DNA of 48,726 nt, from NCBI GenBank assembly GCA_002269645.1, contig NIVC01002816.1, positions 1 to 48,726 on the forward strand, written 5' to 3'. This document shows positions 8,201 through 48,726 of this stretch, piece by piece (position 1 is the stretch's first letter; the number at the start of each line of letters is the position of its first letter). The notes below the pieces were generated by a model. The model searched no databases. It was not told the origin of the DNA and worked only from the letters and a program-made list of their open reading frames with translations. Position numbers and translations under genes: made by a program. This DNA comes from Macrostomum lignano (Eukaryota).

Positions 8201-9456
8201 AGAAAGTTAGGGCCGTTGTACACCCTTTGTGAGCGTGTGTGTAAGTGCGTGTCTGCGGGCAGTATCCCCGCGCTTGTATGTGCTCAGGACAATGTCGCCA
8301 AAGGCCTTGCACAAGGGCCACAACCCTTCTACAAAAGTTTATTTTTAATATATTGTTACCCAGCACTCTCAATTTTTCCTTAATTGTCCAGCAACAACCG
8401 CTGATTGTCAATCTGAACGAGTCCCTGAGCGGCGCCGATCGAGCGAGCATCGAGGCCGACTTTCGCAAGCGCCGGCGCCACCTACCAGCCATGTTCATCG
8501 CCTGCCCGCAGGACCGGACAGAGTCCATGCTCACCACCGCCCGGCCGGACACCCAACTGCTCGGCCGGCTTCAGCGGTGCGCTCGGGCCGCTCTGGCCGC
8601 CTTCGAGACCCGTCTGGCCAGTCCTAGGTCTGAGCTGCTTTCTGCGTCCTCTATGGCCGGCGCTTTTCGATCGGCGCCAGACTCTTTTGACGCTCTGCTT
8701 CATCTGGCGCCGCAGCCGCCGCTGTCCGAGTGTGCGCTTGACCGACTGGCCGACGCCGAGTTGCAGCAAGACTGTGACGAGTCGGACATCGCGGAGGTCG
8801 GCTCCGTATTTAATAGTCCGGGTTTTCACTGGGTTGAGCGGCTGGTGCTCAGGCTAACAGCTGCTCACGGGCAGGCGGCTTACTTTCTGGCCGACTGCTA
8901 CGGCGGGCGCTGTATCGGCGTTCTGCTGCGTCAGCACTGCGGCGGCGGTGTTGACCTGAGCCAGCAGGCTGTGGCTTGGCTTGACACAGCCGGGCCGGGA
9001 CTTGTGGCTCGAGTTGAGCTGTTCCCAAAGAATGCTGGATCCGATAAGGATGGTAAGTTTTATTAAATTTAATGTTTAAACATGTAGAGCTATGATATAC
9101 TGGCCTATTGCTCCGCATAAAGCATTTTGAAGGTTTGCATATTCCGGTTGACGCCAAGATAGAAAGAATTCGTTTTTCTTTGTGTACGCGGAGGGCGTGT
9201 TATACAGTGCGGCCAGAGAGCATGACTAAAAATTGACTGCCGACAATTTAGATTAGGGTAGGGTTTAGGCTTAGGGTTAGGATCGGCAGTCAATCTGTGG
9301 AAGTCAGAAGGCTGGCAGTTGAATTTATACGGCAGAAGTCCAAGTTGATGCACAAAAAGCAGGCCATATAGGATTCAATCTAATTGATCTCTACGATTTT
9401 TCCTTACGATATTTTCCACTAACCCCATTACAGCTGCTGGTTCAACTGAAGCCTGA
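2207..9456 (+). CDS. NOL6: Nucleolar protein 6 / Utp22 (Nrap family), 3' part. Exons 2207-2372, 2463-2546, 3123-3619, 5823-6293, 8392-9052, 9434-9456. Upstream exons not identified.
   Basis: Spliced translation shows Nrap motifs LGINLNP...DKGP...PE|AAEFRQFWSGKSELR..VRETLVW, VRLCLRWLAGHML...GFLLFLQLL and QPLIVNLN. All junctions are GT-AG and phase-consistent. One extra base is needed at the GGGG run 3174-3177. Confidence 0.9.
2746..3095. repeat. 31-bp minisatellite (CAACCAGTCTCAGTCTCAACCTCATCCTCAT)n, about 11 copies, in a NOL6 intron
   Basis: Tandem units read directly; copies degenerate at both ends. Confidence 0.92.
4046..5282. mobile_element. Non-autonomous foldback DNA transposon with ~190-bp inverted arms and a decayed THAP-domain fragment
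   Basis: 4066-4253 is the near reverse complement of 5083-5272. The interior frame 4425-4592 reads *LSSIKTSPKFTPTRNTVLCDKHF...LANPGAIP, matching the THAP W...P...LC..HF...AVP pattern with TGA at the Trp position. No clear TSD found. Confidence 0.72.
6450..7180. repeat. 22-bp minisatellite (GATCCTGAAGCTAATGAATTCC)n, about 33 copies, with a 154-bp higher-order unit
   Basis: GATCC recurs at 6544, 6566 and 6588. A variant block starting TCTAAT recurs at 6751, 6905 and 7059 (7x22 = 154 bp). Confidence 0.93.
7261..7441. mobile_element. 181-bp hAT-like MITE
   Basis: Perfect 8-bp TSD CTTAGTGA at 7253-7260 and 7442-7449. Imperfect TIR (CAGTGGTGC vs CAAGGGTGC). Confidence 0.75.
7705..7890 (-). mobile_element. 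tRNA-derived SINE with a CORE-like domain (family A)
   Basis: The reverse strand has an A-box-like TAGTGGTTTGAGCG and a B-box-like GGATTCGATT, then CCTTAAGCAAGGCACTTAACTCTGCATTGCTTCAGTTCACCCATCTGTAAAA. The body is shared with 48560-48695. Confidence 0.75.
8073..8290 (+). mobile_element. tRNA-derived SINE (family B)
   Basis: A-box-like AGCTCAGCGGTA and B-box-like GTTCGACCC. Body motifs CACATTAATTTGGGGC, GGGCCGTTGTACAC and GTGCTCAGGA recur in diverged form near 32.8, 33.3 and 46.1 kb. Confidence 0.68.
9232..9294. repeat. 12-bp inverted repeat enclosing degenerate TTAGGG units
   Basis: ATTGACTGCCGA (9232-9243) and TCGGCAGTCAAT (9283-9294) flank TTAGATTAGGGTAGGGTTTAGGCTTAGGGTTAGG. Confidence 0.8.
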
Positions 9457-17300: not shown

Positions 17301-18768
17301 GGATGAGCAGAATCCTGCAGGGCAAGAACCCTATCGCAAGATAAGCAACGAAAAGTACGACCTGATTGTCGCTGCTGCCATCGAGAGAGGTGATAGTGCT
17401 GAGCACATTTCGCGATGGCTGGACGTAAAGAGAAAAACTGTGTATTCTATCAGGCGTCGCTATGGAATCACGAAAAATGTCTATGGCAGATTTCCTCGGA
17501 GTAGCGTGTAGGATTAGTTATGTCTATGTGCCAACTTCATATGACCCTGACCCTCACAATTTTTCTATTTTTAATTTATTCGTCTTCACTGGGATCATGA
17601 ACCCATGTCAATGACGCGCTCTTTAGCGTTTAAAGTCCTATCAAAACTGCACAGTACATACCTTGAAGATCCGGTTAGAAAAAGGCATGTATAAGAAAGA
17701 TCTATATAATTTTGACTTGTTTCTAAAACTGTGCAATCTCGAGTAGTTTTTGACGCAATCAACGCGATTTCATTACTGTCATTTTTCCTTCTCCGATCAA
17801 AAAAGCTTTGCCTTAATCGATTTCATTATTGCATCACTCATTGCAGGTACTCTGCAAACTATTCAACGGCTCAGCCAATTGCCTGGGGTCGCAATCTAGG
17901 CTGCAAGTTTGTCTACAATAGCTGCTACGACTGGATGGTGTCGCATCATCAATCGGCCTGGCCTTACTGCAATTTGGCACCGAAGCATACTGGGCCTCGG
18001 GGAGACGCCATGCTTCGCACTGGCTGCTCCGATGATCGCCGCTCCAAGCGGTACTGCAATCTGGATGAGCTGTCTAATGAACTACCGCTGGAGTATCAGT
18101 ACTTTGGCGGCGATGTCAACATTCAGCAGGCTGGTCTATCTCCGGGAGGTGTGAAACTTCTAAGCTCAGAATCCTTTACTCGCTACGGTGGTACGAGTCG
18201 CTTTGCCGACTATTGTCCTTATCCTCAGGCCTACACTACCTTGAGCAAATCCACTGATCGCAATTCTGACTGTTTTCGAATTGGCAATCAGCCAGTGAAA
18301 TCGGCTAATCCCGGCATGGAGCTGTTCGGATCGAAATCCGTATGCCTCATCCAGCCTGAGCCATTCCAATTGCAGTTCTGTGGTCGCAGGCACGCGGCCG
18401 CCACATACGGCAGCGGTTGCTATCCTGTTCGGTGCCCCCCAGCAACCGGCGGCGCGCCGATTGTCACCTTGGCTGGTGGTAGAGAATTCGCCTGTCCAGT
18501 TGGTGGCGGCAAAGTGGATTTTTCTTTAGCTGGGAACTACAGCCTGTACTATGGCAGTTTAGTGTGCCCTCCGTGCGCTCAGCTGTGCTCAAAATATTCT
18601 AACTGTTCCCCATCAGTGTCGAAACTTCTGCAGCCGCCGCGGCTATCGTTGAATGGCATCCATCTGGAACCACCATGTCTCTCGTCAAGTGCCGCTCGTC
18701 AGACTGTTGGGTTGTTGATCCACCTTGCCAAACTGTTTAGCATATTTTGTATTTCACTTCTGCAGTGA
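14349..18768 (+). CDS. LMLN: Leishmanolysin-like peptidase / invadolysin (M8 metallopeptidase), about 728 aa. Exons 14349-14702, 15344-15795, 15925-16119, 16702-16964, 17847-18768.
   Basis: Signal-like start, CQLDGLTDRPLLG-YINLC, zinc motif HELLHALG, HWEKR, Met-turn ELMT, EDTGW|Y, GGTSRFADYCP and a hydrophobic C-terminus (GPI-like). One extra G is needed at 15721-15723. Confidence 0.92.
17236..17511 (+). mobile_element. Tc1/IS630-like transposase N-terminal HTH relic in an LMLN intron
   Basis: RKISNEKYDLIV...ERGDSAEHISRWLDVKRKTVYSIRRRY resembles the first HTH of Tc1-type transposases. No DDE domain or clear TIR was seen. Confidence 0.55.
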
Positions 18769-19682: not shown

Positions 19683-20603
19683 ATGTTAATAAATTTGCGC
19701 AATGGCTTGCTTCTTGTAATACGCTCGTATGTTACAACAGTTTCTGGTGTTGACCGCGCCCCCCGATTGCCTGGGGGAGGGGGGGTGACGGAGGTCTGTG
19801 ATGCAGCGGCCACCACGTTGAGTACCACTATCTGTTCCATCTTTTCCGTCTTACTGGCCTGCTGCCTGGGTACCTTTGACCATCGACCATCACAAATATA
19901 ATCCGTAATCCCTTTCGTAACAATCAAACTGTAAAAGCAAAAGCAGCGAGTCTCAATTCTCATTTCATCTCATCTTACTCTTGATGAACTGCCTAATGCT
20001 TCGTTTATTGTATTCTACTCGTACTAGTACTACTAATACAACCCGATAACATCACTAGCTAGTTTGCGAATCTTGTCACATTCACTACCAATTTCTTTGT
20101 TCGGGGTGCAAAACTGGTGACAGCGCGGCGCTCACGGCGGGTCCACCCCAACTGCCAGCCGACAATTGCCAGCCGACAACTGCCAGCCGACAATTGCCAG
20201 CCGAAAACTGCCAGCCGACAACTGCCAGCCGACAACTGCCAGCCGAGAAAACTGCCAGCCGGAAAACTGCCAGCCGAGAAAACTGCCAGCCGGAAAACTG
20301 CCAGCCGACAACTGCCAGTCGACAATTGCCAGCCGGAAAACTGCCAGCCGGACAAGTGCTAGCTGGAGTACCACTAATATTAATGCAGACAGCTGTAAAA
20401 AATATAGCTCGGACTACGTGTACGTCATCCGTGCCGAAAGCTACTGCCCCCAACCTGTCCAGGACGTCCTGCTCACCATGCAGGGCCTGTTCAGGGGGGG
20501 GGGGCAGGCTCAAACTCAGCGATATGTGGACTCACTGGACTGCCTGCTGTGCGACGCCAATGCGCTGGACACCGCCGGCGGGTGGACTTCGTTCTCTTGC
20601 TAG
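19683..20603 (+). CDS. Putative small Cys-containing orphan gene. Exons ~19683-19869 and 20389-20603.
   Basis: A phase-1 donor at 19870 and acceptor at 20388 join ...FSVLLACCL|DSCKKYSSDYVYVIRAESYCPQP...LDCLLCD...FSC* in frame. Exon 2 is GC-rich like other exons, and AATAAA lies near 20764. No family recognised. Confidence 0.3.
20149..20355. repeat. 14-16 bp tandem repeat (ACTGCCAGCCGACA / ACTGCCAGCCGGAAA)n, about 14 copies
   Basis: Tandem units read directly; they explain the overlapping repetitive ORFs at 20059-20643. Confidence 0.9.
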
Positions 20604-21042
20604 CCCTGCGGCGAGCCATTGGACACTGTCCCTATTTCTGTAACTCTTGGGCTAATGTAATTTATTGTTCATGTTGTTTCTATAGCTCGTATTAGAAGCT
20701 ATTCTACGGGGCTTTAGCTCGTACATCAGTGGCGTAACTCGTAATTCAGAGCTTGAAACTTAAAATAAACTGTCTACATTACACACTCAGACTTGTAATA
20801 GGTATAAAATTTGCACAGCAGAACTTTTCCTTTTAATAAAACTGAAGTGTGACTAACAGAATTTATCTGAATTCGATCGAATTTTGCTGACCTACAAAGC
20901 TTTGCTTGGCTTATTTGCTACATGAAATTTAAAGACTAACAAAACAACAGATCATGTTCATGTTCATGATCTTCTCATGTTTATGCAAAATAAAAAAGGA
21001 ACGAAACAATTATAACAGGAAAATAGTAAAATTTATTTCTGA

Positions 21043-30256: not shown

Positions 30257-33200
30257 TTAAGTGGACGAGCAGGTGAAATACGGTCTGAGTATGATTTTAA
30301 AAACAACAACTTTTGAGAGGCTGTTCAGCAGGCAGTAGCGCTTTGAGCCGGGCGAGCAGGGCTGCACCGTGGGCTTGCGAAGTCGCTTCACCACCGGCCT
30401 GTAGGTCTTTCGGTAGCTCAGCTCCGGAGTGCAGTTTCTGGAGAAGTCACGATTGTTGTGATTGTGTCAAGACAAAGTTTAGCCTCACGGGTCCGCTGAA
30501 GCTTAATAGATTTCACATCTAACTCAAGCCATTTCTCATTTTCCATTCAATTTTTTATTTAACTTACCTCCACTTCACCCAACTCAGCAATTATTTTGTC
30601 TAGACTAATGCAACACTCTCCACTGTAATATATGCAGCACCAATACACCCGAATCTCCTTCATTCTACTCCACCCACTCCAATTCAATCCAGTTCAGTCC
30701 GCTCCTCTCTCTCCTTTCCATTCTCTTCCCATCCCTCCACTCCAATCCACTCTTCTCCCCTCCATTCCACTTCACTTCTCTCTACTCCACCGTTTCCCTT
30801 TCCTACCCCTTCACTCCAATAATCCAGTCCAGTCCACTCTTTTTATTTAATTCCATTTCACTCCACTCCACTCCCCTCCCCTCTCCTCCAATCCTTCCCC
30901 TCTCCTCCAATCCTTCCCCTCTCCTCCAATCCTCTCCCCTCTCCTCCAATCCTTCCCCTCTCCTCCAATCCTTCCCCTCTCCTCCAATCCTCTCCCCTCT
31001 CCTCCAATCCTTCCCCTCTCCTCCAATCCTCTCCCCTCTCCTCCAATCCTTCCCCTCTCCTCCAATCCTCTCCCCTCTCCTCCAATCCTTCTTCTCTCCT
31101 CCAATCCTTCCCCTCTCCTCCAATTCTCTCCCCTCTCCTCCAGTCCTTCCCCTCTCCTCCAATCCTTCCCCTCTCCTCCAATCCTTCCCCTCTACTCCAA
31201 TCCTTCCCCTCTCCTCCAATCCTCCCCCTTTCCTCCACTCTATTCCCCTCAATTCAATTCCACTCCGCACCAATCCGCACCAATTCACTTCACTCCATTC
31301 CAGCCCACATAAGCTCCATCCGGTCGCCACTCACCGTCGTTGACATCTGGCTCCGTAAAAGCCAACCCGACACCTGCAGAGACCGTCGGATTCGATACAG
31401 CGCCCACCGTTCAAGCAGAGGCTGCGGTGGCAGCGAACCCGATGACAGAACCGACCGCGATAGCCAGGTGGGCAGGAGCATTTGCCGGGGCGAATGCAGG
31501 TGCCGCCGTTCACGCAGGGTGGGTAGCAGTCCGCTGAAGCGGGTGAAAGTGGCATGTGAACTGCAGTCTGAAAAAATTCTATTTTTACATTCGTTTTCTG
31601 ATCTAAATTTAGTAGTGATCATTAGAAACAGTTCTACAATGTCTCATTAATAAAAAATAAATAAATCCTATTTAATACATGCTATATTAGGCATTCGACG
31701 CCCGCAATTGGAATGTAAGCAGAGTTGGATGCGGTAAGTACGCAACACAGAAGCCGCTTGTGTCACCCCTCAAAGCAGCCAACGTATGCGAGGGATAAAC
31801 TATGAAGAGTTCAAGTTCTATGGTAGTTCTCTGACGCACGCACACGAGACATACGAGAGCTCGGTAGAAATGCAGATAGAGCTGCGACTGAGCAAATTCT
31901 ACACAGCTCTCGTATGCGTCGCGCAATGACAGCGGTAAAGACGCTCAATACTAACTAGGCATTTTCCATGAATGAGGATCTTTCAAATTCGACTTTAAGA
32001 TGCAAAAAGTTCATCTAGAAAGTAGCCAGAGGCGGACCAACCTGTCTGGCACTGGGTGCCCGAAAATCCGGCAGCGCATGCACACAGGTTTGGGCCGACG
32101 CAAGCTCCACCGTTTCGGCACTGCGGTCGGCACAACGGCTTCCGACATCGACGCCCGGACCAACCCATCGGACAGCGACAGTCACCGCCAGTGCGCGGGT
32201 CGCAGACTCCGCCGTTGCGGCAAACAGTTGCGCTTTTGCGCCTACGGCGTCCCCTACCGTACGCCCGACGCCGGCAGTCGAATTTCCATCGACGCCTCGG
32301 AGGAGAAGCCGTCGGTAATGGAAGTTTCGGCTGCGTTGGCACCGGCTGCTCTGACAGGACCGTCTGGCAGCGGTCACCGGTGTACGAAGTGGGGCAGATG
32401 CAGCGAGATTTGTAGCAGAATCCGCCGTTGAGACAGGAGCTGCAACCGGCGGCAGATCCGGCGCTGTGGTCAGGATTGCATAGCGGCAGGCTGGGACAGG
32501 GTCGGGACTCGACTGGCGGGCGGGACCCGGCAGGATGGCAGCTGTCGGCTGGTGAGTTGCCACGGCACAAAGAGTGGCGGCTGCGAATGCCTTCGCCGCA
32601 GGTGGCGCTGCAGGAGCTCCAGGCGGTCCAGTAGGTTGGAGGCGGAGTCTGTTTAACGAGACAGTTCAGGCTCAATTATTTCGCTTCGCTTTGGGCACTA
32701 CGCAAAAAACAAGACGACATTCGACAGGCAGCCAGCAAGGAGATCAAAATTTATGCCCATTTTTCTCATCCCTGAGCATCCGCTCATGCCCACAAAGGCG
32801 CACGCAGGTCACACAACGCTCACACTGAGTGTACAGTGGCCCTGAAATTCTCATCTTTAGGCATGTGAACTCTGTCCCTTGGGGGTTGATTAGCAAGATA
32901 GGTGATCGTTAGTTTGATTTTTTCAAGAGACTGCTGGAAAGTCGAAAGCACTGTGTGTTCTTCAAACGAATTTATCACGGGGAGCATTATAAACGTTCCA
33001 ACTACACTTCAACGGGACGTGAACTTCACTTTCATATGGCACTTTGGGCAGGTCCTATTCTCGAAAGCGATCTTTGGTCTCGCAGTCCTCATTGTTTCGC
33101 AGGCCAATTTATGGTCTGCTAATCTAAACTGTGACATAGGGTGCACTTGAATTCTGGATTGGAAATTTCCAGGAGATGATAGTACCGTTTACGTACGTAC

Positions 33201-36200
33201 GCAGTCATACGCACAGGCACACTCACACAGGAGTGTACAGCGGCCCTAACTTTATTTTATCCTTAGGTATGTACACTTCACTGTGCCTTGATGGTTGGCC
33301 CTCAAGGGCGGTATTAGCACGAGCAGACCCAAGCCCCAAATTAATGTGACTGAACATGAAACCCAGCCCAGGCCGCTAGCACATAGGAGCGCCGCCGCGT
33401 TAGACCGCAGAGCTGCGCCCCCCCCCCCGTTATTAACGTTTATTCTGCATTAGAAATTGTCATTGCAACGAGACAGCTGATTGTTAAGTTAAATGAAATA
33501 TCGAAGCTGTAAATAAATGCAGGCATACATGTACTCCTTTCGTGTCCCTGCAAATGCATATTGGAACTTCAATTATAATATTTTTCTCTGTCAAAACGCA
33601 AGAATTCAAATCGATGACCTACCACTTTTTGTTCCTCGGAACAGTCTGTTGCCTCGGACCATGGCACAAAATTCGCACTTAGAAGAGCCTGCAGTTATTT
33701 TGCTTATTTGTTATTTTGTATTCAACTCTCATTAGTATATGCAAACCAGTTATCGTTTAAAACGTACCTTTCTAGGTGTCAAAATGAACTTCGAACCAGC
33801 ACCGGGAACTGGCACGCTACCAGAGGACAGGCATTCGATTGAGAATTCAGCAAAGCTGCCTTCGCTTTCATTTGCAATTATTCGCAAATAAATTGCAACT
33901 GATGGAGCCGTTGAAATATCTCTCCACATGCTCGAGGCAGACGTCATGGTGAGGACTGAGACGTGATCTTCAGCAACAGTTTCCATGGCGACTCGAATAC
34001 CAGACAAAATCGGAGATATCATCAATGCCAGAGCCGTCTCCTTGGAGAATTTTTCGATGCGTTGATTATCGATTGGAATGGCAATTGACTCATTGCTTGT
34101 ATTTTTAGCATTCAGCTGTTCACCGAGAACTTCTGTCTTAACTGGTCGCATGGCTGAAAATCCAGAATTTTAAACCTTCACTTTTCTATTGCTGCCATTG
34201 ACAAATTTAATTAAGCTGTCAAAATAAAAATTAAAGTTAATATGCTACGAATTTTATATGCAGTAGAACAGATTGTTTCTTCAATTCAGTTCTACATTTT
34301 TGTCTCATTTTCAGTTTTGAGTATAGGAATGCAGTGGTCCGACTTTGACTCTGAAAGGAACCACTACGAGCGTACAGCAAACACAACAACCAGCAGGTTA
34401 CCTATAAAACTTTTTTCTACAGGCAAATCCAACGAAAAGGTTGAGTTTGGTTTTTCTGTTTAAAATAAGACAATATGGACGTCCTGAAGGCCAAATGTCT
34501 TTGGCTCTTAATAAATTAAAAATCTGTTTCAGCCCATGGAGGCATGGGTGCTTGATATCTTGGTCTTCAAGGCGGTTTTTTATTTGAATTTTGGAATTTA
34601 ATTTTTTAATGTTGACTGCCCAATTTTTGTGGGAATACCGAAAGTTGAAAGAAAATTATCAGAATTTTAATTTTTTAGAATTTTGCGTGGAGCTAGACTT
34701 TTGTCCTTTGAACATGTATTAAATATTACAATATATTGTATTGTATTTGTAACTATGCGAGCTATATTATATACTCTTTCTTTCCAACAGCTGCGAGCAT
34801 AGGCTGGAAACCCAATACTGTAGAGCTTTGGGTCGGCAAACTTTTTAACCTCAAGGACCAGATCGAAAACCCAGAGCATGACTGTTGGCCAGACAGAGAA
34901 GGAATAAAGAAGAGAGAGGAGAGAAAGGAGAAAGGAGAGGCGAGAGAATAAATGAGAGGAGACGAGACGAGACGAGATATTAAATAGAAGAGAATATAGG
35001 AAAGAAAGGAGAGAAGATTAGAGAAGAGAGATGAGAGAAAAGGAGGACTGAGTACTGAAGAGAGAAGAGGAGCGGAGAGAAGAGGAGAGAGGAAAGAAGA
35101 ATAGCAGGGGAGAGAGAAGAAAAGCGAAAAGAGGCGACTTTACTGGAAAGCTGAGATTCTGAGATCTGAGATCTGAGATGAGCACGGATAGAGACACAAG
35201 CCTTATGATGGCAGCGGATTGTTATCCGTGCAGTTTCAAAGGACCAGAGACGCTTTGCCAGCCGCATGTGGCCCAAGGGCCGGAGTTTGAAGACCCCTGC
35301 TGTAGAATAATGAAATTTTCTGTTTAGAGAAACATGGTCCGGAAATTCCCTCCGACGAACTCCATATTAGATTCCCATATCAATGGCAACAAAGGTTACC
35401 TGTTAGAGGTTTTAAAAACAAGGTTTGCATTTAGAATGTCTTTACTGTAAAACATTTTCTCTTTATTCCTGTAATCGGTGAGTCCAAACGGAGCGGAATT
35501 CTCACCTTCGCAAGGCCACCTATTGCACTGACGAGTCTGTTTGGCGTCCCCGTAGTCGCAAGGCGGTCCGGCGCAATTTCTGACTCTCTGTCTGATGCCA
35601 GCGAGGCCGCAGCTGCCGCTGCAGGCCGTCCAACTTGACCAGCTGAACCAGCCTGAATTGTGGGGGAGAAAATTCCCATGTTTTTTTCTTACTGAGCTCA
35701 TTAATGAAGGGTAAAATGTCGCTCAGCAGTCTATAATGAGTTATAGTTAACATATAGTCTTTGCTTCAACTGTGCAATAAAGCAGTGATCTCGGAATCGC
35801 TCACCCAAGGCCGTCGCAGCTCTTGCCAAATTCGATTCTGTCAACTGGGCTGTCGCGGCAGATGGTCTGGCATAAAAAGCCATGAGCCTGGAGCCCGACT
35901 TTGACAGGAAAAATATCAACCAGTCATCTTGAAAAACTTCGCTCAAGCAGCTAACTGGATCTCCGTATTCGTCAATTACCACTGTGCGATCATTGGTATC
36001 ATCAAAGGCGCTTCGGTTGCTAAGGGGCAACAATCCATTACCCTTCAGCACCTCGAGCACTTGAATTTCGGCTGAGTAGCTTCTCCTTGAGCCACTGCCT
36101 GAGCCACTCGCGGTTGTATTGAGCACATGTCCAGTGAGCACAATCGGAGAAGACTCTGCCAAATCTTCGATACTTTTTGAGACGCCGCTGCCTCTGCTAC

Positions 36201-36300
36201 CGCTGCCGCTCATCGCCAAATTTAGGTAGCATGCCCTGCTTTCCCATACTGCCAGCAGAAGCAGCAACAACAACAACAACCGAACACTAAAAGCTTTCAT
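30257..36300 (-). CDS. Secreted NtA (agrin N-terminal) + 2xTSP1 + 5xEGF protein. Exons 36300-35805, 35652-35506, 32648-32042, 31560-31335, 30437-30257.
   Basis: Signal peptide MKAFSVRLLLLLLLLLAVWESRA. NtA-like IVLTGHV...YSAEIQVLEVLKG...VVIDEYGDPVSC...IFFL. TSP1 WFSWSSWTACSGSCG and YWTAWSSCSATCGEG. Five CxNGGxC EGF units. Exon 2 ends in phase 1 but exon 3 starts in phase 0, so a small exon or indel is unresolved. Confidence 0.75.
30860..31240. repeat. Polypyrimidine/polypurine 19-20-bp minisatellite (CCTCTCCTCCAATCCTTCC)n, about 19 copies, flanked by degenerate TCCAC/TTCAA pentamers
   Basis: Periods of 19 and 20 measured directly. Lies in the last intron of the NtA gene. Confidence 0.92.
32755..32890 (-). 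mobile_element. SINE family B, 3' fragment
   Basis: Reverse complement contains GGGCCACTGTACACTCAGTGTGAG and TGCTCAGG, as in 8073-8290. Confidence 0.55.
33195..33420 (-). mobile_element. SINE family B copy
   Basis: Reverse complement has the head GCAGCTCTGCGGTCTAACGCG, plus CACATTAATTTGGGGC and GGGCCGCTGTACAC. Confidence 0.62.
34826..35299. mobile_element. Second copy of the hAT MITE seen at 19034, with an expanded GA-rich core
   Basis: Shared ends GGTCGGCAAAC..TTAACC..ACCAGATCGA and GCCGCATGTG..GGGCC..GACCCCTG. TSD CTGTAGAG/CTGTAGAA (7 of 8 match). Confidence 0.8.
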
Positions 36301-37070
36301 TTCGATCGAAATTTTGGAAGCCAAGCTTTCTGCTGCTGCACTTGGCTGCTGTAAGAAGAGGCTGTTTTGTTCTCTTCTTCTCAGGCTTAAGAAGCGGTCT
36401 TTATCCTCTGCTTGGTGGCTTTCGCGTCTATAAATTAATGAGGAGAAATTTCTTTCAAAAGTGGAGACGTCGTAAGTTGATTAGCTAAGCCCATCAACTT
36501 CTGGGCCAATGGTCTCTGCGCGTCCTTTCCTTTTTCTGCGGCCCCTTGTTCGTCTGCGCATTGCTTGGGCTTATTATTATACTTTCTCCGTCTGACTTCT
36601 TCGACAGATAAAGATAGAAATGGCAGGACTGTAACGCCTGAGTGGCTGCCCCTCTTCTCTCCCTCTCCGATCTTCTCTCAGCTTTTCAGCCATTCAGAGG
36701 CGCTCCGGGCGCAACTCATGTCTGAGGCTATTGCAAAAAGTTTATGGCTATGTGATTTTATAATTTAGAGTAATAGATCTCTTCGAAGACTGCCGACTCG
36801 AGCGAGTTAATGCGAGGGTTTAGGAGAATTGAGCATGGACAGTTCAATAGGAGAGATAAGATTATATGGATTGCTTATAAATTTATTTGTCTTTACGAGT
36901 GTCAATATTATTATTTGTAGCACAATGTCCTTTACGATTCCTTGATGTCCTAAACTCTCAACTTTCACTCTTACACATGGCATCCTAGCTTGTAGTCGCC
37001 TCAAATATTTTTAGTCTGCAGCACAGCATTTCCACTTGACTCGCACTCAGTTGATACCTAATTTAACCGA

Positions 37071-39737: not shown

Positions 39738-42700
39738 ATGTCAGAAATCGAAAGCAGTTTCAGAAGCGCCGGACAAATTCGGTCGTTGCTGTGCTTTCTG
39801 TTAGTCAGCATCTCAGCAGGCATCGCCTACAACGCATCCTACGTGTTTTTATCGAGCATGACGACAACTCTGGAGCGGCGCTTTGGTTTCGATTCAGAGG
39901 ACACGGGGCGAATCATAGTGGCGAATGATATTGGCTTCGCTGCAACTGTGACGCTAGTTAGTTTCTATGGCAACCGAGGTCACAGGCCTCGCATTTTGGG
40001 CCTGGGCGCAGTTGTTATGGGTCTGTCCACGGCTGCCTACGCACTTCCATATTTTATCTACGGCCCGAAGTACTCGAACGCCGAGATTGCACGCTATTTG
40101 ACTCTCACGGATCAACAGCTCGGCTGGAAGAACGACAGCGAGCAGCTGAAAGCATTAGCTGCTGAAAACAACGACCTATTGTGCCGTGGAAAAATCCTCG
40201 ATTTGAACTCAACAGGCATGTTCAACAAATCCTCAGAGTCAAACAAGTATCCGAGGTTGGGTTCAACAACATCGGAATCATCCGCGACCAATCAAGTTGA
40301 AGCCCGCAAAGTAGTCTTTGCCATCTTTATGATTGTCGGGATCGTTCAGGGCGCCGCTTCTGCCCCCTCTTGGTCAGTGCTATTCACAATGGTCGAGGAC
40401 TCAGCCACCCCGTCTCGGTCGCCAATCTACATCGGCCTGGTCATCACTGCTCGATCAATATCACCAATGCTGGGCTATTACTTGATCGGGCAGTTTTTAG
40501 CACTGCACGAATCATTTGGCGAATCTGGTCTGCGTGAATCCGACAGCATGTGGATTGGCAACTGGTGGCTGGGGTTTCTCAGTCTCGGCCTGCTTACCAG
40601 CCTGCTTGGCTTTCCCATGCTGCTGTTTCCCCGCCAACTTGAAGACGCGTTCTGCTGCTCGGAAAGACCGGATGAGCAGAAAGACGATCCCTGTGATGCT
40701 GAAGACGATCCGGACGCCTCTCATCCTGAGACTCCGCTAAACGAGGCAAATATAGTGCGCCGTATGAGTCGCCACAGGTCGTGCGAATCGCAGCCGCGCG
40801 GGGCCGGGAATTGCGCAAAATTCCTTCACAGTCTTCGCGACTTGTCACTCGCCGTGAAGCGCACTATGACCAATGCGATCCTCATGCTGGTCATGCTGTC
40901 CTGCGTGGTCAGTTTGCTCGGTTCAGGTCTCGAAGTGTTGTTTATTGTCAAGTACTACGAGAACTACTTTAACGTATTGCCCTCGGCAGCAGGACAGTAC
41001 GTTGGCATCACCTATGCGCTGCCAACCGCACTGGCAACACTAGCTGGAGGCTACTTGGTGTCGCGCTTGCAGCTTGACGTGGTTGGAATGATGCGACTCA
41101 TCTGTGGTATCTTTCTGGTGACCACCGTACTGAATTCGCCAGCATTCTTTCTGGACTGTCCCTCCGAAAGGATCAATACGGACGTGTAAGATTACATATT
41201 TTCATCTCGATTATTTGTGCTATCGATTTGTCAATGCATTTCAATGCCATCGTTCAGAAAACACCGAACAAGATGTGCACTCAGATATATTCACATGCTA
41301 AAATATCAAGGTATTGTGCTGGATGTATCCATCCAAAGTTACCAATGCATCGCTGTAGATGTGTAACGTAATCACGCTAGATTTTTCAATCATGCAGGGT
41401 ACTGGTTCCCACTACCTGTACACGTAAGAATGATCCCAGGTACGTTAAAGGAAAAGTTAGTGAAATCATCGAGTCTAGAACTTTGATCCTATGGCTCATT
41501 TCATATACCCATGTGTATTTATCAATAGAAAAAATTAACCGCTTCGTTGATTCGTACATCGGCATTCATTTTTGCCAAAAAGTGCAAAACGGCTTTATTT
41601 CCATAAAGCTCGTAAGACCGATAACCGCCGTCACAGCCTCACAGAAACAATGGACAGCAACGTCAGTAGCGTCTCCGACTGCGCTGCAAAGTGCAGATGC
41701 GATGCCACTCTCTTGAACAATCTGCCAGTGTGCGGAGCTGATGGAAACTTATACATGTCACCGTGTCATGCTGGGTGTACAGGGACAATGTCTGTAGCAG
41801 TTGCTGAGAACGGGACACACCAGGTACAAATTCTTTTGTTATTATCGAAGATCTGTTTCTGCTAATCAATTGCTTTTATTAAGTAATTACTCATTATAAC
41901 TTATTTCCGATGCCAGCCTACGGAGATGGTGTTTAGCAACTGCAACTGTTTAGAACAGGCATTTGTAAACTACAGTTTAACGGACTCCGCTGAACAAGGC
42001 CTTGTCAGCAGCACTGCACTGGCAGGCAGTTGCTACGGTGTATGCGACATGGTCTATGCCTTCTCCGTGCTGAAATTCATCGCACATTTTGTTGACGGCC
42101 TGTCGTATGTGTCATGGTTCTTACTAGTGATGAGGTGCGCATGTTGCAAAAATTTGATGCTGTGGCATTTATTAGGCAATAATCAAAAGAGGAACCGTAC
42201 GATTTTTAGAGTGACAGACTCAAAGGACGACGAGGCCATGGGTGTCGGGATTATCTCGCTGTTCTTCAGTCTTGCCGGTAACATATTAGTAATACTTAAT
42301 TGCATTGCTGAGATATTTTCAACTAAACTATAGGAATAGAAGGCTCCATACATACAACCCTATCGATATTTTTTTACTTTATGGATAAACTTTTGTGAAA
42401 AAAGCACAGTACGAGGGTAATGCAAAAACTCATAAAAAGCTGTCCTAAGCTTTATTTTCTTCTTATTTTCTTAAGTCTCCATGACAAACATCAATGTCCC
42501 ATGCCGTACGCTAGTTATTCAACGCTTCGAAATCATTATTCAAGGCTATTAAACATACATTCATGAGACAATGTTTCTGTGCATATAGTTTTGGGGGTAG
42601 ACAATGATTAATTCTTCACGAGTGGCGAAGCCATATACCAAAACCATATGCACAACCTACCATTGTTTCTCAATGGTCCGTGCATCATTGGTAGATTGTC

Positions 42701-43780
42701 TATATGGTTTTGGAGGTATAGACAATGAATATTTTTTCACAAATGACTAAAACTAAGCAATAACATGCACCCCAGATGCATGTTAATGAGTAGTGAAATG
42801 CTTGAACCCATCGGGTACTTGAAAATTTTTGAGACTTACACCATATTGTGCAAGTCTTCCATATTGAGACTTGCCTATGGCTATGGCTTAGAGGGTCCCA
42901 GGAATTAATGTCCCTAAATGTCGAGTGGAACCCACTGGATTCGCCAGCGCAATTGATGTCTGGGCGCATCATTGATTGTCAGAGTTACAACCAACTGGTT
43001 AGAAATTTCGCATTCATTTTTCTTAACAATCGCGCTCACAAACAAAGTTTTGTCCTGTACGATGTGACAACAGCAGGTTGTTGTGTCGATCGCTACTCTA
43101 TGCGTGTGCGTAATTGTGTGTACACCTCTTAGCTATCGATCGCAGTACAATATACGAGCGTATGATACATAAGTTAGAGCGTGGAGAGTTTGAGAGCTTG
43201 AGAGTTTCGCCTACAAACTTGCAGACTGACTGGCTTATTCATTCTACAACACAGGTGACTTGCCTAAGCACAAGTACCCTTTAACAAGGACCCGCTAGAA
43301 CCTAGAACCGCAAATATTCTGGCCCGTCCTCAGCCCCATTCTGTGTCTAAAATCGCCTAGGCTTCCGATGAAGAACAAGAATCAAATTGAATTGAACAAA
43401 AGCACTTGAAAGCACTTGATGACCTTTCAGCCTCCATCATGGGCGGCTTCTGCGGTCGTATTTATGAATCCGCGTGCCTGGTAGCCACCAGCGGCTCAGC
43501 TGGAGAACGCAACTGCCTGCTGTACGACAGGACGCGACTTCGGATTCTGTTTAACGGCATCCCCATGCTGGCCAGGCTGCCTTACTTCGCCCTGCTGCTG
43601 GCCGCCTATCTGCTAGTTAAACGCCGCTTCGGCAACACGACCGGAAATTGTGCTGAGCAGCCGAGTGAAAATGCAGAGGAAAATTGTCAACTGGGTGACG
43701 TCAGCTCCAAATTGCCTGACAACAAATCTGAGCAGGATGACGTTGAAACCGCTGCTGTAGCTGGTGCAGAAGAAATGTAG
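39738..43780 (+). CDS. Organic anion transporting polypeptide (OATP/SLCO family), about 756 aa. Exons 39738-41185, 41637-41823, 41917-42134, 42210-42277, 43431-43780.
   Basis: LERRFGF..EDTG, VSFYGNRGHRPRILG, family signature DSMWIGNWWLGFL, Kazal-like loop CAAKCRC...PVCGADGNLYMSPCHAGC and final C..YD. All junctions are phase-consistent. Confidence 0.92.
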
Positions 43781-45563
43781 CTCTAAATTTTAGGAGAAAA
43801 TCAATCACAAGGATAATAACATCTGAGATTTGCGTCCGAACGTCGGCTTAGGGTATTTTTGACCGACTAACTTTTTAAGTAAGATAACAAACTTGGCCCC
43901 AAGTAAAAGCTACTTTTTTCTACTACGAGCTATAGCTAAAAGTCTGTTTTTAAAGCAATTAGCAGTGAAGTGGCATATATTGCATTCCAATTTTATTTTT
44001 TCTTTTATAAACCAGCTGTTCTACTCGAAGCATCTGAATATAGTTTCGACTGCAAAAGCACATGTAGTCACTAAGCAAAACACCCAAAACTGACTAAGAT
44101 ATTTCAGAAGTGGAACTAGAAATAACTCTCAGGCAAATGAATGTGAACTGATTTTGCTTTTTGATACACAAGGTTCATTGTGATTTACTTACTTAACGAT
44201 GTCCATAAAAAAGACAACGGTAGCTCGTGAACTAATCACCCAATCAAAAGTATAAAAACCGCGCCATTTTTTCAATAAAATTTTACGTTTTCTTAATAAT
44301 ATTTTTATATATTAGAAATGCATTATATATTTATTCTCCCACGATTATTTTTTATATCGACTGTACGACTCTTCAAGTTTCAATCCATCATACCATCTTC
44401 ACGCCCCATGCAGCCTTGGAACGTAGTGCTATTTGAAGTGAAAACTGAAATGCCATGGACTTTTTACCTTCATACGCTTAAAAATGTTTATGCCCTCAGT
44501 TTTGAATTAGCAAGTAAAATTTTAATTAATTAATTTATTCATATTAAAGCCCGTTGAGCTGCATTATGATTTCAACTGCAAATTCGGCATTCTGTCTTAT
44601 GCTCGGTAGTCTGCTTTAGTCATGCGGAATTAGAAATGGGACATCCAAAGCTAAAGCCTATTAGAATAAAGATAGATACATACTAGTTATTGAGTAGTCT
44701 CTGAGATACATATTTTTAAACGAGTTGATTAGCATCAGTGCTACAAGTCTGATAAGTGATAACTGAGCACAGACTTCTGGGACAGGTGAACAACCAATAA
44801 ATAAAAATCACTGGTCGCCAATAATTCATCAGTCCTGATATTCTCAGTTTTACAATAAATACTGATGCAAGCAGTCACTTGGCAGATAAGTGGCAAACCA
44901 GTGAGTTTTAGATCTTCAAATGTGTTTTTCTGCTCAAACGAAGGGGCTGCACAAAATCCCTGTCGTCCTCGAAGAACTTAACCTGTTGTTATATGTTTGT
45001 TACTTTTGTTTTTTAGCTTACATATACATGGCAATGAGGTTATAACAGTTGTTACTATACTGCTCATGACTTTGCGCACGCACCGTTATGAACAAATTAA
45101 ATTACAAGGATAGCGCAGCATTCATCTGCAGCGTCAAAACTACGACTCAAAGCTTTCAAAGGCTATCTTGAGCTCGAATTTTACATTCAACTTTGCGTTA
45201 AAAAAATCGCTGCTATTTATCAGCTTCACAACGTTAGTAGTGCAAGCGCATTTATTTTCGCTTTCATAGAGAACTGCCGATTCGCCATTCTGTGTATATT
45301 CTGTGGTATCTGCAGGGCAAAGCCGCTTTCATAAATTCGTATGCTGGCTCTCAATCTTTTTACACAGTCTATGGCAATATATTGCATGTTGGTGGCGACT
45401 TCAAGTTTGTCTCTCAATCACGTTTTTCGCTCAGAAATTTGCTCCTATGGCCCAAACTATCTTTGTTCTGTAGGCTTTCAACTTTGAATGTTCAGTTTCT
45501 AGCTGATCATGGCAAAGGAGCTATTATGAACTACATTGCAATAGTTGTCAGTCGGCAAAACTA

Positions 45564-46989
45564 ATGAGGCTGCATGCAGTTATTGCAATTTCAGCATTTC
45601 TAACGGGCTTCAGTGCTGGTGAGTAACTTGAGTTTACAAGATTAGCTATATATATACATTACTCATGTTTTCAGCATATGAGTCATGACTACTCCGCGAC
45701 GTTCGGTAGCAGTTAAGGTACTTTATCCAATCTGAAGTATTTGAAGTTGTACTTCATCAATCTGAATAAAATCAACGTTGGGTAAACAGGTAACGGCTTA
45801 ATATAAACAGTTAGTGCTTCCAGCAACAAAAGCAATAAAAACACGAACTCACTGCGAGAAGGCAAAGTGAGCCGCCAGTAGAGCGCGACGGGGGTTTAAA
45901 AACACCCCTGCCACCCAAGGGGGGGGGGGCAGGCGGCGATGTACAATCAACGCGCTGGGCACTAAAGCCGGTTTGTGCACTTTCGCCGCACAAACCAGTC
46001 CACTTAACAAGTGTATAGGGGCGGTTGGCAGAGCAGCTTGCGCCACAGGCCCACAACCCAATTGGTTTGATTTAGTGGGCGGCTACATTCATTCGGGCTT
46101 GTGCACCAATAATGGTGCTAGGGGTTGTCGTACGATTCATACCCATGAGGTCCTACCCCAAGGTCACAGAGAGTGTACATGCCTGGCGATTAGAAAGTAG
46201 GGGCTGCTGTACACCCTGTGTGAGCGTGTATGAGAACGTCTGCATACAGTATTGGAGAACTTGCATGTGCTCAGGAGGCAGGGGAATAGGCAGAATTGCC
46301 TCGACGCTGGTTGTTGGATGATGTCGTCGAAGGCGTTGCGCTGCAGGGTGCCCGCAGCCCTCCTGCGAATACTTAGTTCTTCATGCACAACTGTAGGCTA
46401 TGTCGTACGTACTTTGCCATTCAATCAAAAGTACTTTATGAAATTGGTTAATTTATCAATGAAATAATAGCGCATAGTTATTTAAGTACTTTTGTATTAT
46501 TGTATTTATAAGGCCTTTTAGTCGTTTGCTAATTGAATACAGCAAAGTTAAGCAGAGATGACTGCGTATAATACGCAGCTGACCTTCAAGAGAGCTCCAG
46601 ATCACTCATTGTGTGATAGGGTAGCAGTTTAGTGTTCCTGGGTGTACATGCATAGTAATTTGTATCATGTACTGATCACCCATATAATGTAACTCAGGCC
46701 AAATTCAAGAAGCTCTGTTCTGCCCAGGAGAGACTATTCAGCTACGGTGTCCAAGGGGCACCAAGTCGTGGTCAGCTACGTATTCTATGGCAGGCGCCAG
46801 AACCAGTGGCAGTGCCATCTGTACCTCAGGCAGTGGTGCACGGACCCCGACGCTGTGCATAAGATCCGACGACTCTGTCAAGGCAAACGGAGCTGCCAGG
46901 CCACCGCCGACGAGAGTTTGTTGGGGACAAAGTGCCCGCCATATACGAGCTATCTGATCATCGAGTACTACTGCTTTAAACTGATATGA
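45564..46989 (+). CDS. Secreted single-domain SUEL/rhamnose-binding-lectin-like protein, about 115 aa. Exons 45564-45618 and 46698-46989.
   Basis: Signal exon MRLHAVIAISAFLTGFSA, phase-1 intron, then FCPGETIQLRCP.G-HQVVVSYVFYGR...LCQGKRSC...LLGTKCPPYTSYLIIEYYC. One extra G is needed at 46755-46758. Confidence 0.8.
46017..46276 (+). mobile_element. SINE family B copy (diverged), in the lectin intron
   Basis: tRNA-like head GGGGCGGTTGGCAGAGC, then TACATTCATTCGGGCTTGTGC, GGGCTGCTGTACACCCTGTGTGAG and GTGCTCAGGA. Confidence 0.55.
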
Positions 46990-47643
46990 ATTTCATACAC
47001 TCGAATTGCAACTCTCAAAACTTGTAAGGTTATTTAAATTTCCCTAAGAAACTACTGTTAGTGATGTGCTCGTAGTGATGATTCTACGAGCTAAAGTATG
47101 CAACAATTTTTCCTGAAGCTGTATTTGATATTGGCGTAAATATTATTGGATAATGAAATAAAGATATTAGATACTGTTAAAATAATATTTGAAATTAATA
47201 AAAAAAATTTGATAAAGGTATGAATACTTTTTGAAATTGATATAAAATACAATTGATAATGAAAAACTGCTCTTGCGCTTCGAGTGATGACGTACATGTA
47301 AGTTGGTTGAACTCGCCATGAAGTAAGCAGGATTAAACGTCAGTTCGGTTACAAAGCGCTCACCAGCCGTGAAAAGATTGTCACCGTTTATCAGTCACAG
47401 AAATTCCTAACTAAAGTAGGTGCACTTCAGTACGCGAGTATCGGCACTACTCACGCCATAGGCCGAAGCCTTCGATTGGTTCAGCAATAGACTCAAGCAA
47501 GGGGAGAGGCCCGCCCTTGCATCAATAAATCAGCTAAGCAGGCACCGAAGGCAGGACCCGCCGCCTCTGAAGTTTTCAGGTGCAACCTACCGTTCGGTCT
47601 CAAACCAATTTGTCAGACGTAATCTTGCTACAGCAAATTCGGC

Positions 47644-48024
47644 ATGTCCGTCAACCAGATTTTGTAAGTGCCAATTTCACTAATGCCATTTTGACAGCTT
47701 ATCTAGCACACAGATTGTCAGCCATAACACGGCTGTAAAAGCTAAACTAACGCTTTTCTCATCACCCACAGTGGTCTGAGTCTGCTCATGGCAATCGCCA
47801 TCGCCGGAGCAGTCGGCGGAGTCAACAAGCGCTCCTCGTTCTCAGCCGAGCAGCCGCAGCTCTACTGCTACGAGAAGCACCCAGAAGAGGCGCGGTGCAA
47901 CAAGTGCTGCGAGGAGAACTACAAGTTGTGCAAGAAGGAACTTGGCTGCGGGAAGAACGACTGGCGCTGCCAGAACCCCTGCTGGGAGTCTATGAAGTAC
48001 TGCGACTACCAGTGCAAGATCTGA
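47644..48024 (+). CDS. Secreted 10-Cys prepropeptide, 90 aa. Exons 47644-47663 and 47772-48024.
   Basis: Phase-2 GTAAGT...CACAG intron gives MSVNQIFGLSLLMAIAIAGAVGG-VNKR-SSFSAEQPQLYCYEKHPEEARCNKCCEENYKLCKKELGCGKNDWRCQNPCWESMKYCDYQCKI*. Exon 2 has strongly C/G-ending codons. Confidence 0.8.
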
Positions 48025-48559
48025 CTGGACTGACAACTGCAAAACTGGACTTTTTAATTTAGAAGCCAAGGGTGGAGCCTGAGAGACTTGAGACAGACTA
48101 ATCTGCAAAAATACTGATATACTACTTTTCTACAACTGAAACTAGCAAACAGAAAGGTACATCTTATCCTTCCCCCGCACAGCCACCCTAGTCCGCTATA
48201 GTTGATGTGGAAAACTGAGATAACCACCTTTGTTAGTCACCCCAGCGCCGAGCTGTGCGAATTCTGGCACAGCTGTCCCAAACCTGACAATTTAAAAGCG
48301 CAGCATCGCAATATTGAATAGAGTTCTCTGTTGTCTCTGGCTTAATTTTTTCAACGCATCAAAAACAAAACTGCAACATCTGCTGGAGCAGTGTACTGGA
48401 TAAAATCTACAAAAATGACCGTAGATCAATGGACAGTGTTTAAATCACAAAGTCCATTTCAGTTTGGGACAACATTTAGGCGAGTTTCGATATGAATGCA
48501 AATTACGCTCGTAAAAACCGTGTGACAAGCTCACTGTAGTTCTGTGAAAATTCCATGAA

Positions 48560-48695
48560 GGGGCTATAGCCTAGTGGTTAGAGCGTCTCTCGACCCACTC
48601 GGAACAATTTGTGTCCTTGAGTAAGACACTTAACTCTGCATTGCTTCAGTTCACCCAGCTGTAAAATGGGTACCAGAATTAGCTGGGTAATAGTA
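48560..48695 (+). mobile_element. SINE family A (CORE-like), internally deleted copy
   Basis: A-box TAGCCTAGTGGTTAGAGCG, B-box region missing, then GTGTCCTTGAGTAAGACACTTAACTCTGCATTGCTTCAGTTCACCCAGCTGTAAAATGGG. Confidence 0.75.
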
Positions 48696-48726
48696 CCTTA
48701 GGTACATTAATACCCATGCTTTAAGG

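Follow-up and report, generated by a model that had tools for sequence, protein, structure and literature searches.

The 48,726-bp contig NIVC01002816.1 of the Macrostomum lignano assembly GCA_002269645.1, referred to in its entirety as the window, holds a real and constrained coding gene, Mlig024245, that is already deposited but uncharacterised. The best overall explanation of its 90-residue product, and one that we consider reasonably probable, is a lineage-restricted, secreted mini-protein of disulfide-stapled helices, made as a pre-protein and not as a prohormone. The framework of its ten cysteines is unmatched in all profile and structure libraries searched here. Together with a distant paralogue, Mlig017896, the gene appears to form a small two-locus family found so far only in M. 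lignano, a restriction that may reflect database content.

Gene structure, copies and constraint

The coding sequence of Mlig024245 is split by a single short intron (Table 1), with the donor TT|GTAAGT and the acceptor CACCCACAG|T. Its translation, MSVNQIFGLSLLMAIAIAGAVGGVNKRSSFSAEQPQLYCYEKHPEEARCNKCCEENYKLCKKELGCGKNDWRCQNPCWESMKYCDYQCKI, is laid out as MSVNQIFGLSLLMAIAIAGAVGG-VNKR-SSFSAEQPQLYCYEKHPEEARCNKCCEENYKLCKKELGCGKNDWRCQNPCWESMKYCDYQCKI, and the 63 residues after the KR pair contain 10 cysteines with spacings of 9, 2, 0, 6, 5, 6, 3, 6 and 3. Splicing, translation and a count of the spacings gave exactly the ten-cysteine framework, VNKR and hydrophobic N-terminus described in the original prediction. 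Without exon 1, the longest open reading frame begins at M13 (MAIAIAG...) and keeps only a stump of the hydrophobic segment; the micro-exon is therefore needed for the signal peptide. Trans-splicing at the exon-2 acceptor was considered as a substitute. The M. lignano spliced leader, which we take to end in AUG, would by this reasoning supply a start codon that is out of frame for the Cys-rich reading frame, so that a cis-spliced exon 1 is needed. The third-position GC content (GC3) is 0.84, against a GC content of 44% for the window, and all 10 cysteines are encoded by TGC.

Table 1. Features of the Mlig024245 gene and of the remainder of the window (contig NIVC01002816.1)
Feature	Coordinates	Strand	Remarks
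Spliced coding sequence	47644..47663 + 47772..48024	+	273 nt, in frame, 90 aa
Exon 1, coding part	47644..47663	+	20 nt; MSVNQI and the first two bases of codon 7, then donor GTAAGT
Intron	47664..47771	+	108 nt, phase 2, GT..AG; within the signal-peptide coding region
Exon 2, coding part	47772..48024	+	Remainder of signal peptide, VNKR, 63-aa Cys-rich domain, TGA stop
Predicted signal peptide, hydrophobic core and c-region	47773..47820	+	Residues 8-23; with exon 1 gives MSVNQIFGLSLLMAIAIAGAVGG
VNKR, proposed dibasic site	47821..47832	+	Seen in translation
Cys-rich domain	47833..48021	+	63 aa, ten Cys, SSFSAEQPQ...QCKI; from translation
C-terminal signature CWESMKYCDYQCKI	47980..48021	+	Residues 77-90; most conserved segment of the family (paralogue alignment)
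Low-divergence block	47546..48324	+	Only 6 substitutions against the homeologous locus; dense differences on either side
SUEL-lectin gene	45560..46989	+	Exon 1 ends at 45619, exon 2 46698-46989, TGA at 46987-46989
OATP/SLCO organic-anion transporter exons	39738..43780	+	Pfam OATP, E 2.4e-79
Leishmanolysin-like M8 peptidase exon	17731..18768	+	Gene fragment (Pfam)
TSP1 and EGF-repeat exon	31995..32675	-	Gene fragment (Pfam)
Agrin NtA-like domain exon	35731..36324	-	Gene fragment (Pfam)
Nrap/NOL6-like exons	5826..6410 + 8245..9066	+	Gene fragments (Pfam)
Dispersed repeat	48561..48726	+	
Dispersed repeat, second copy	7719..7822	-	84% identical
Tandem repeat	30803..31330	-	Here and in the next row, long repetitive ORFs of GEGKDWRRGE and PADNCQPT types
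Tandem repeat	20085..20643	both	

By exact-sequence look-up, the 90-residue product is identical to the M. lignano GenBank proteins PAA55050.1, PAA55054.1 and PAA91690.1, deposited as ‘hypothetical protein BOX15_Mlig024245g2/g3’, and our gene model is the same as the deposited transcript-based model of the Mlig_3_7 annotation. RNA-seq and transcriptome assemblies underlie that annotation, which was produced with StringTie, TACO and TBONE and whose gene-boundary pipeline uses trans-splicing and poly(A) reads (PMC5730564). The spliced model of Mlig024245 therefore rests on transcript data.

Three loci encode the identical 90-residue protein. One of these (L002) matches the window at 99.5% identity and is an allelic or very recent copy. 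The other (L001) is homeologous, with flanks that are 93–96% identical to those in the window. Compared with this locus, all 253 nt of exon 2 are unchanged, and exon 1 departs from it only at 47649 (C/G) and 47661 (T/C), both of them synonymous third positions. A single difference is found in the 108-nt intron and two in the next ~300 nt on the 3′ side, compared with ~2–4% difference events, or 6.5–8% per base including indels, in the outer flanks. The low-divergence block (Table 1), whose boundaries we infer, probably corresponds to the transcribed unit with both of its UTRs; inspection of its 3′ part by eye revealed no canonical AATAAA. Since the intron and ~300 nt on the 3′ side share in the low divergence, part of the apparent constraint could be due to gene conversion between the homeologues. 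A tblastn search found no further copies of the gene in the window or the homologous loci. The claim that a spliced gene is present here is borne out by the match of its product to the transcript-based annotation, by the unchanged exon 2 and by a paralogue that keeps all ten cysteines.

The same strand carries, 654 nt upstream of Mlig024245, a gene for a SUEL-type (galactose/rhamnose-binding) lectin, and the order is kept at the homeologous locus. The lectin orthologue there is annotated as Mlig004957g1 (Pfam SUEL_Lectin, E 2.6e-15); no gene is listed for the lectin in this contig. The window also holds exons of an OATP/SLCO transporter, the 3′ exons of which are wrongly fused with the lectin and the Cys-rich peptide in the UniRef entry A0A1I8G1Y5 (354 aa), and fragments of several other genes. 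With its tRNA-like head (GGGGCTATAGCCTAGTGGTTAGAGCG...) and a tail of the form ...GACACTTAACTC...CAGCTGTAAAATGGGTACC, the dispersed repeat resembles a tRNA-derived SINE; scans of the window for tRNAs (ARAGORN) and Rfam families called nothing, including at this repeat. The tandem-repeat ORF regions probably represent satellite or low-complexity DNA and not genes.

A same-genome paralogue and the search for relatives

A HMMER search over 1.84 billion protein representatives returned three matches (P0004, P0005 and P0006). P0005 is M. lignano Mlig017896g3, a protein of 96 residues (E 3.3e-5, ~32–34% identity), whose deposited versions are PAA84244.1, PAA84373.1 and PAA58971.1. All ten cysteines align between the two proteins, giving the shared framework C-X9-C-X2-CC-X6-C-X5/7-C-X6/10-C-X3-C-X6-C-X3-C. 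Indels are confined to the C5–C6 and C6–C7 loops, where Mlig017896 is longer by 2 and 4 residues, respectively. The C-termini are nearly the same, CWESMKYCDYQCKI in Mlig024245 and CWERMKYCDFQCGI in Mlig017896, and the common signature CWE[SR]MKYCD[YF]QC[KG]I stands at the very end of both proteins. Identity reaches 11 of 14 residues (79%) over this segment, against 11 of 49 (22%), or 4 of 42 when cysteines are left out, in the rest of the post-KR region.

The two genes are also built alike. In each, a micro-exon 1 of 14–20 coding nt precedes an intron of phase 2 that interrupts the signal-peptide sequence. In Mlig017896, the 14-nt coding micro-exon (ATGTCTGGACATTA|GTAAGT) is followed by an intron of the same phase, two codons earlier than that of Mlig024245, and the remaining coding sequence forms one exon. 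The signal peptide of the paralogue is clean (…AASVEA|SP…), and the stretch after it, SPAQQQRPHQQPPQVDC, contains no dibasic pair. The paralogue is arginine-rich where Mlig024245 is lysine-rich, and mildly basic with a net charge of +2.5. Its genomic neighbourhood differs and includes no lectin gene. Two copies of Mlig017896 (L004 and L005), with a flank divergence of ~5.5%, differ by four synonymous changes and the two replacements M75V and R77Q, both in the C6–C7 loop; such a distribution is what purifying selection on the helices would produce. The intron measures 843 nt in Mlig017896g3 and 1354 nt in g2, and in g3 (L004 10015-10566) consists mostly of a long (TCTG)n microsatellite and, after it, repeats of the (AATT/CATT/CAAC) type.

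The other two matches were not accepted as relatives. P0004 is an old 354-residue model of the same locus, which fuses OATP-transporter, lectin and peptide exons, and does not represent a separate protein. P0006 is a prokaryote-like singleton ORF of 147 residues on a gene-dense 1.5-kb metagenome contig (L006 616-1059; JGI metagenome 3300028647, contig Ga0272412_1068694), with a database-wide E-value of 8.4e-5. The spacing motif C-X5-CG-X5-RC-X4-W-X5-C[D/N] of the window peptide recurs in each of its two internal repeats. Three of the ten Cys positions are missing from P0006, its resemblance to the paralogue is much lower, and it has neither a Pfam match nor relatives of its own. We regard the likeness as chance or convergence; that the shared module reflects real distant homology or horizontal transfer is a weaker possibility. 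A scan of JGI metagenome contigs with the family profile found none.

No known family could be assigned from any other source. A Pfam-A hmmscan of the precursor at E-values up to 10 returned 0 families, and thus no match to TIL, prokineticin/colipase-like, Ly6/uPAR three-finger, macin, granulin, WAP or insulin domains or to the small Tim proteins with their twin CX3C. Phmmer and profile searches of the PDB gave nothing significant; the sole listed match, ribosomal eL42 at E 0.63, is noise. Foldseek searches of the PDB with the models of both paralogues found no match, a weak negative given the low confidence of the models. A word-indexed search of 5.8e9 protein clusters, queried with the precursor and with the paralogue, returned only the query’s own cluster. 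In that resource, the 90%-identity cluster of the 90-residue peptide is represented by an unrelated lectin of 115 residues, to which it is bridged by a fused model of 179 residues; as a result, the word-indexed search misses the peptide, and with the precursor even the query itself was not returned.

Convincing relatives outside M. lignano were thus absent from the 1.84 billion proteins searched with HMMER. The earlier statement that the cysteine framework fits no known family agrees with every one of the Pfam, PDB sequence, Foldseek and HMMER searches, the same-species paralogue apart, and the Foldseek comparison that had been proposed as a check was run with the result given above. ‘Orphan’ holds with respect to other organisms, but has to be qualified by the distant paralogue in the same genome. 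The identifiers Mlig024245 and Mlig017896 had no mention that we could find in the main texts and supplements of the M. lignano literature, a coverage that takes in some genome-wide tables only partly.

Predicted helices and disulfide pairing

AlphaFold2 models were built from the three-sequence alignment and are of low confidence, with a mean pLDDT of 61 for Mlig024245 and 60.5 for Mlig017896. A three-helix layout is predicted alike in both. The helices span residues 35-42, 46-64 and 71-87 in Mlig024245 and 35-42, 46-63 and 82-94 in Mlig017896, which has a floppy loop between the last two. In both paralogues, the two CX3C motifs, 6 residues apart, are placed on one continuous C-terminal helix (pLDDT ~60–75). 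In Mlig024245, the cysteines of this last helix (C73, C77, C84 and C88) fall at i, i+4, i+11 and i+15, on one helix face, and those of helix 2 (C49, C52/C53 and C60) at i, i+3/4 and i+11.

Between helices 2 and 3, antiparallel pairs with a constant i+j can be drawn in each protein: 49-88, 53-84 and 60-77 in Mlig024245 (sum 137), and 49-94, 53-90 and 60-83 in Mlig017896 (sum 143). On the geometry of these spacings, the pairing in Mlig024245 would be C49-C88, C53-C84 and C60-C77, leaving C39-C52 and C66-C73. The original prediction had likened the paired CX3C motifs to those of disulfide-stapled helical hairpins. Its expectation of a helical peptide is matched by the all-helical models, but the two motifs are predicted to sit on one helix and not on two arms. 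Since they lie 6 residues apart on the same predicted helix, the CX3C motifs would staple the last helix to the preceding C-X2-CC-X6-C helix, in place of forming arms of the alpha-hairpinin type.

Scorpion kappa-hefutoxins and similar peptides are cystine-stapled helical hairpins, and it is this scaffold that Mlig024245 resembles. It is not a member of the plant alpha-hairpinins, which have the core CX3C-X4-20-CX3C and by definition exclude a ‘CC’ by the core and more than two extra cysteines (PMC11591084). Like them, Mlig024245 is small and predicted to be secreted, with a likewise predicted antiparallel helix-loop-helix and disulfides between cysteines spaced i/i+4, and its C73-X3-C77-X6-C84-X3-C88 formally fits the core. 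In contrast to the 4–6 cysteines of alpha-hairpinins it has ten, six of them outside the core, with a CC at residues 52-53; its CX3C pair is placed on the same helix by the low-confidence AlphaFold model, rather than one per arm; and it is of animal origin and has no sequence similarity to them.

Secreted all-alpha proteins of 40–90 residues with at least three disulfides include Aplysia attractin, the Euplotes pheromones, eclosion hormone and Conus con-ikot-ikot, and in some helical disulfide-rich signalling proteins and toxins conserved motifs on the helix surface bind the receptor. The cysteine frameworks of attractin, the Euplotes pheromones, eclosion hormone and con-ikot-ikot differ from that of Mlig024245, and no Pfam, PDB or Foldseek match connects them, so the comparison is one of analogy and no homology is claimed. 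A bolder proposal would be a new fold, a three-helix bundle in which a twin-CX3C helix is stapled to a C-X2-CC-X6-C helix, defining a Macrostomum-specific family whose members would signal outside the cell in a species-specific manner by means of the invariant C-terminal helix, for instance as pheromones or as mating or seminal ‘allohormones’. We consider this combination improbable.

Processing, rival explanations and role

The signal peptide was judged by Kyte–Doolittle hydropathy and, by eye, the −3/−1 rule. Both paralogues have signal-like hydrophobic N-termini; in Mlig024245 the 9-residue average is 2.2–2.8 across residues 6-16, and basic residues are absent from the n-region. A cut after A18, A20 or G23 (AIA|G, AGA|V, VGG|V) satisfies the −3/−1 rule in each case. 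A signal-like N-terminus is thus supported, as originally described, but the length of 23 residues is one of three candidates. The KR pair stands 4 residues past a plausible signal-peptide end and 11 before the first cysteine, without an Arg at P4. Shuffling of its non-Cys residues placed a dibasic pair in the 15-residue spacer before the first cysteine of Mlig024245 in 42% of trials. Given this chance expectation, and the absence of KR from the sole relative, the data do not bear out the description of the product as a prepropeptide with a KR processing site. The pair is probably incidental, or at most a site of optional trimming. It may still be cut, because the spacer is predicted to be disordered (pLDDT <50 for residues 18-33), but it is not a feature of the family and gives no evidence for a prohormone.

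Two explanations assign the Cys-rich part to a different kind of product. One makes it the C-terminal domain of the upstream SUEL lectin, either alone or fused with OATP, as in the older deposited models A0A1I8J989 and A0A1I8G1Y5 (179 and 354 aa, respectively), both of which join lectin exons to the acceptor at 47771/47772; the proximity of the two genes at both homeologous loci is in keeping with this. The lectin ORF, however, stops at its own TGA after the lectin domain. The 179-residue model requires a non-canonical AT donor at the lectin stop, and the 354-residue model a cryptic GT within the lectin domain that deletes its conserved C-terminal part, whereas the transcript-based annotation holds the two genes apart. 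The peptide has its own ATG micro-exon and predicted signal peptide, with only synonymous differences between the homeologues, and Mlig017896 stands alone. We judge a fusion protein highly implausible. Because the fused models need non-canonical or cryptic donors and the paralogue has no lectin neighbour, the adjacency of the lectin and Mlig024245 is probably not functional coupling. The other explanation is a prohormone or neuropeptide precursor, in which a convertase cuts after VNKR and frees a 63-residue, five-disulfide hormone or pheromone with a dedicated receptor. The location of KR between the signal-peptide end and the first cysteine, in a spacer whose predicted disorder would make it accessible, suits this idea, and large helical disulfide-rich hormones and pheromones do exist, among them eclosion hormone, CHH/ITP and Aplysia attractin. 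Yet no dibasic site precedes the Cys domain of Mlig017896, and with a chance probability of p = 0.42 for the pair in Mlig024245 the prohormone reading is weak; nor is it helped by the missing P4 Arg or by the lack of an amidation or other processing signal. Cys-rich hormones are usually ancient and conserved, whereas no orthologues outside M. lignano were found in 1.84e9 proteins. A prohormone thus seems distinctly unlikely.

The remaining two alternatives concern what a secreted mini-protein of this kind might do. As a host-defence or toxin peptide, it would be a Cys-stabilised antimicrobial, or an effector against predators or prey, from epidermal, pharyngeal or gut glands. A small, disulfide-rich, multi-copy, lineage-restricted product with predicted secretion is what such a role would lead one to expect, and the paralogue is mildly cationic. 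Cys-rich orphans dominate the predicted AMP-like repertoires of helminths, and flatworms are reported to be without the classical lophotrochozoan AMP families (PMC10414684). Mlig024245 resembles those candidates as an orphan, small, signal-bearing, Cys-rich flatworm peptide with no classical AMP homologues, although it is not cationic; the same study dropped peptides of more than 60 residues, left the Cys-rich candidates untested and makes no mention of Macrostomum (PMC10414684). Against a defence role, the window peptide shows strong hydrophilicity (GRAVY −1.2) and is close to neutral (pI 6.5–8.1), with a net charge of −0.5 after KR cleavage or +1.7 without it, which is atypical for a cationic antimicrobial peptide; it has no obvious amphipathic cationic surface, and no similarity to a known toxin or AMP fold was found in Pfam, the PDB or Foldseek. 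We see the defence role, as a separate explanation, as possible if on the unlikely side; it overlaps with the role proposed under our best explanation. Alternatively, the protein might be a reproductive secretion, either a seminal-fluid (prostate) or an egg or female-tract protein, evolving fast under sexual selection. One study describes reproduction-related genes of Macrostomum as rapidly evolving and often without orthologues (PMC7336406), a description that fits a small protein with predicted secretion and no detectable orthologues elsewhere. Both genes are, however, absent from the complete table of M. lignano transcripts annotated by in situ hybridisation (PMC7336406), a weak negative as the positional tables are partly covered, and from the supplements of the seminal-fluid screen. 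This role we rate as unlikely, and on present data neither defence nor reproduction is preferred.

We thus return to a secreted, disulfide-stapled helical mini-protein as the preferred explanation. The 90-residue product would enter the secretory pathway through the N-terminal signal peptide that the phase-2 intron splits, releasing a mini-protein of ~7.5–8.3 kDa. Five disulfides would hold a short N-terminal helix together with an antiparallel helix-loop-helix, with C49, C52, C53 and C60 on helix 2 and C73, C77, C84 and C88 on helix 3, in a rigid, protease-resistant scaffold. The near-invariant last helix (CWExMKYCDxQCxI) would be the likely functional surface, while the loop from C60 to C73 would be free to vary. 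The analysis shows the gene model and its copies, the constraint on them, the existence of the paralogue and the lack of further relatives in the databases searched. Secretion, helical topology, disulfide pairing and functional surface are what we infer here, and the biological role is a guess: most likely that of an extracellular effector or ligand in a fast-evolving secretion, defence/mucosal or reproductive, and not that of a conserved neuropeptide. Lineage restriction, to the extent that the databases sampled reflect it, argues against a classical neuropeptide, and together with the multiple copies, the variable loop and the invariant terminal helix it suits a fast-evolving effector better.

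The significance of the gene is limited: invertebrate genomes very commonly encode secreted Cys-rich orphan peptides, this one has already been deposited and no unusual mechanism is indicated. If the model is right, the family would provide a compact five-disulfide helical scaffold without solved or annotated relatives. Transgenesis, RNAi and in situ hybridisation are routine in M. lignano, so its role is directly testable. Scaffolds like this one hold some interest for peptide engineering, as well as for the origins and diversification of lineage-restricted secreted proteins after the recent genome duplication of M. lignano.
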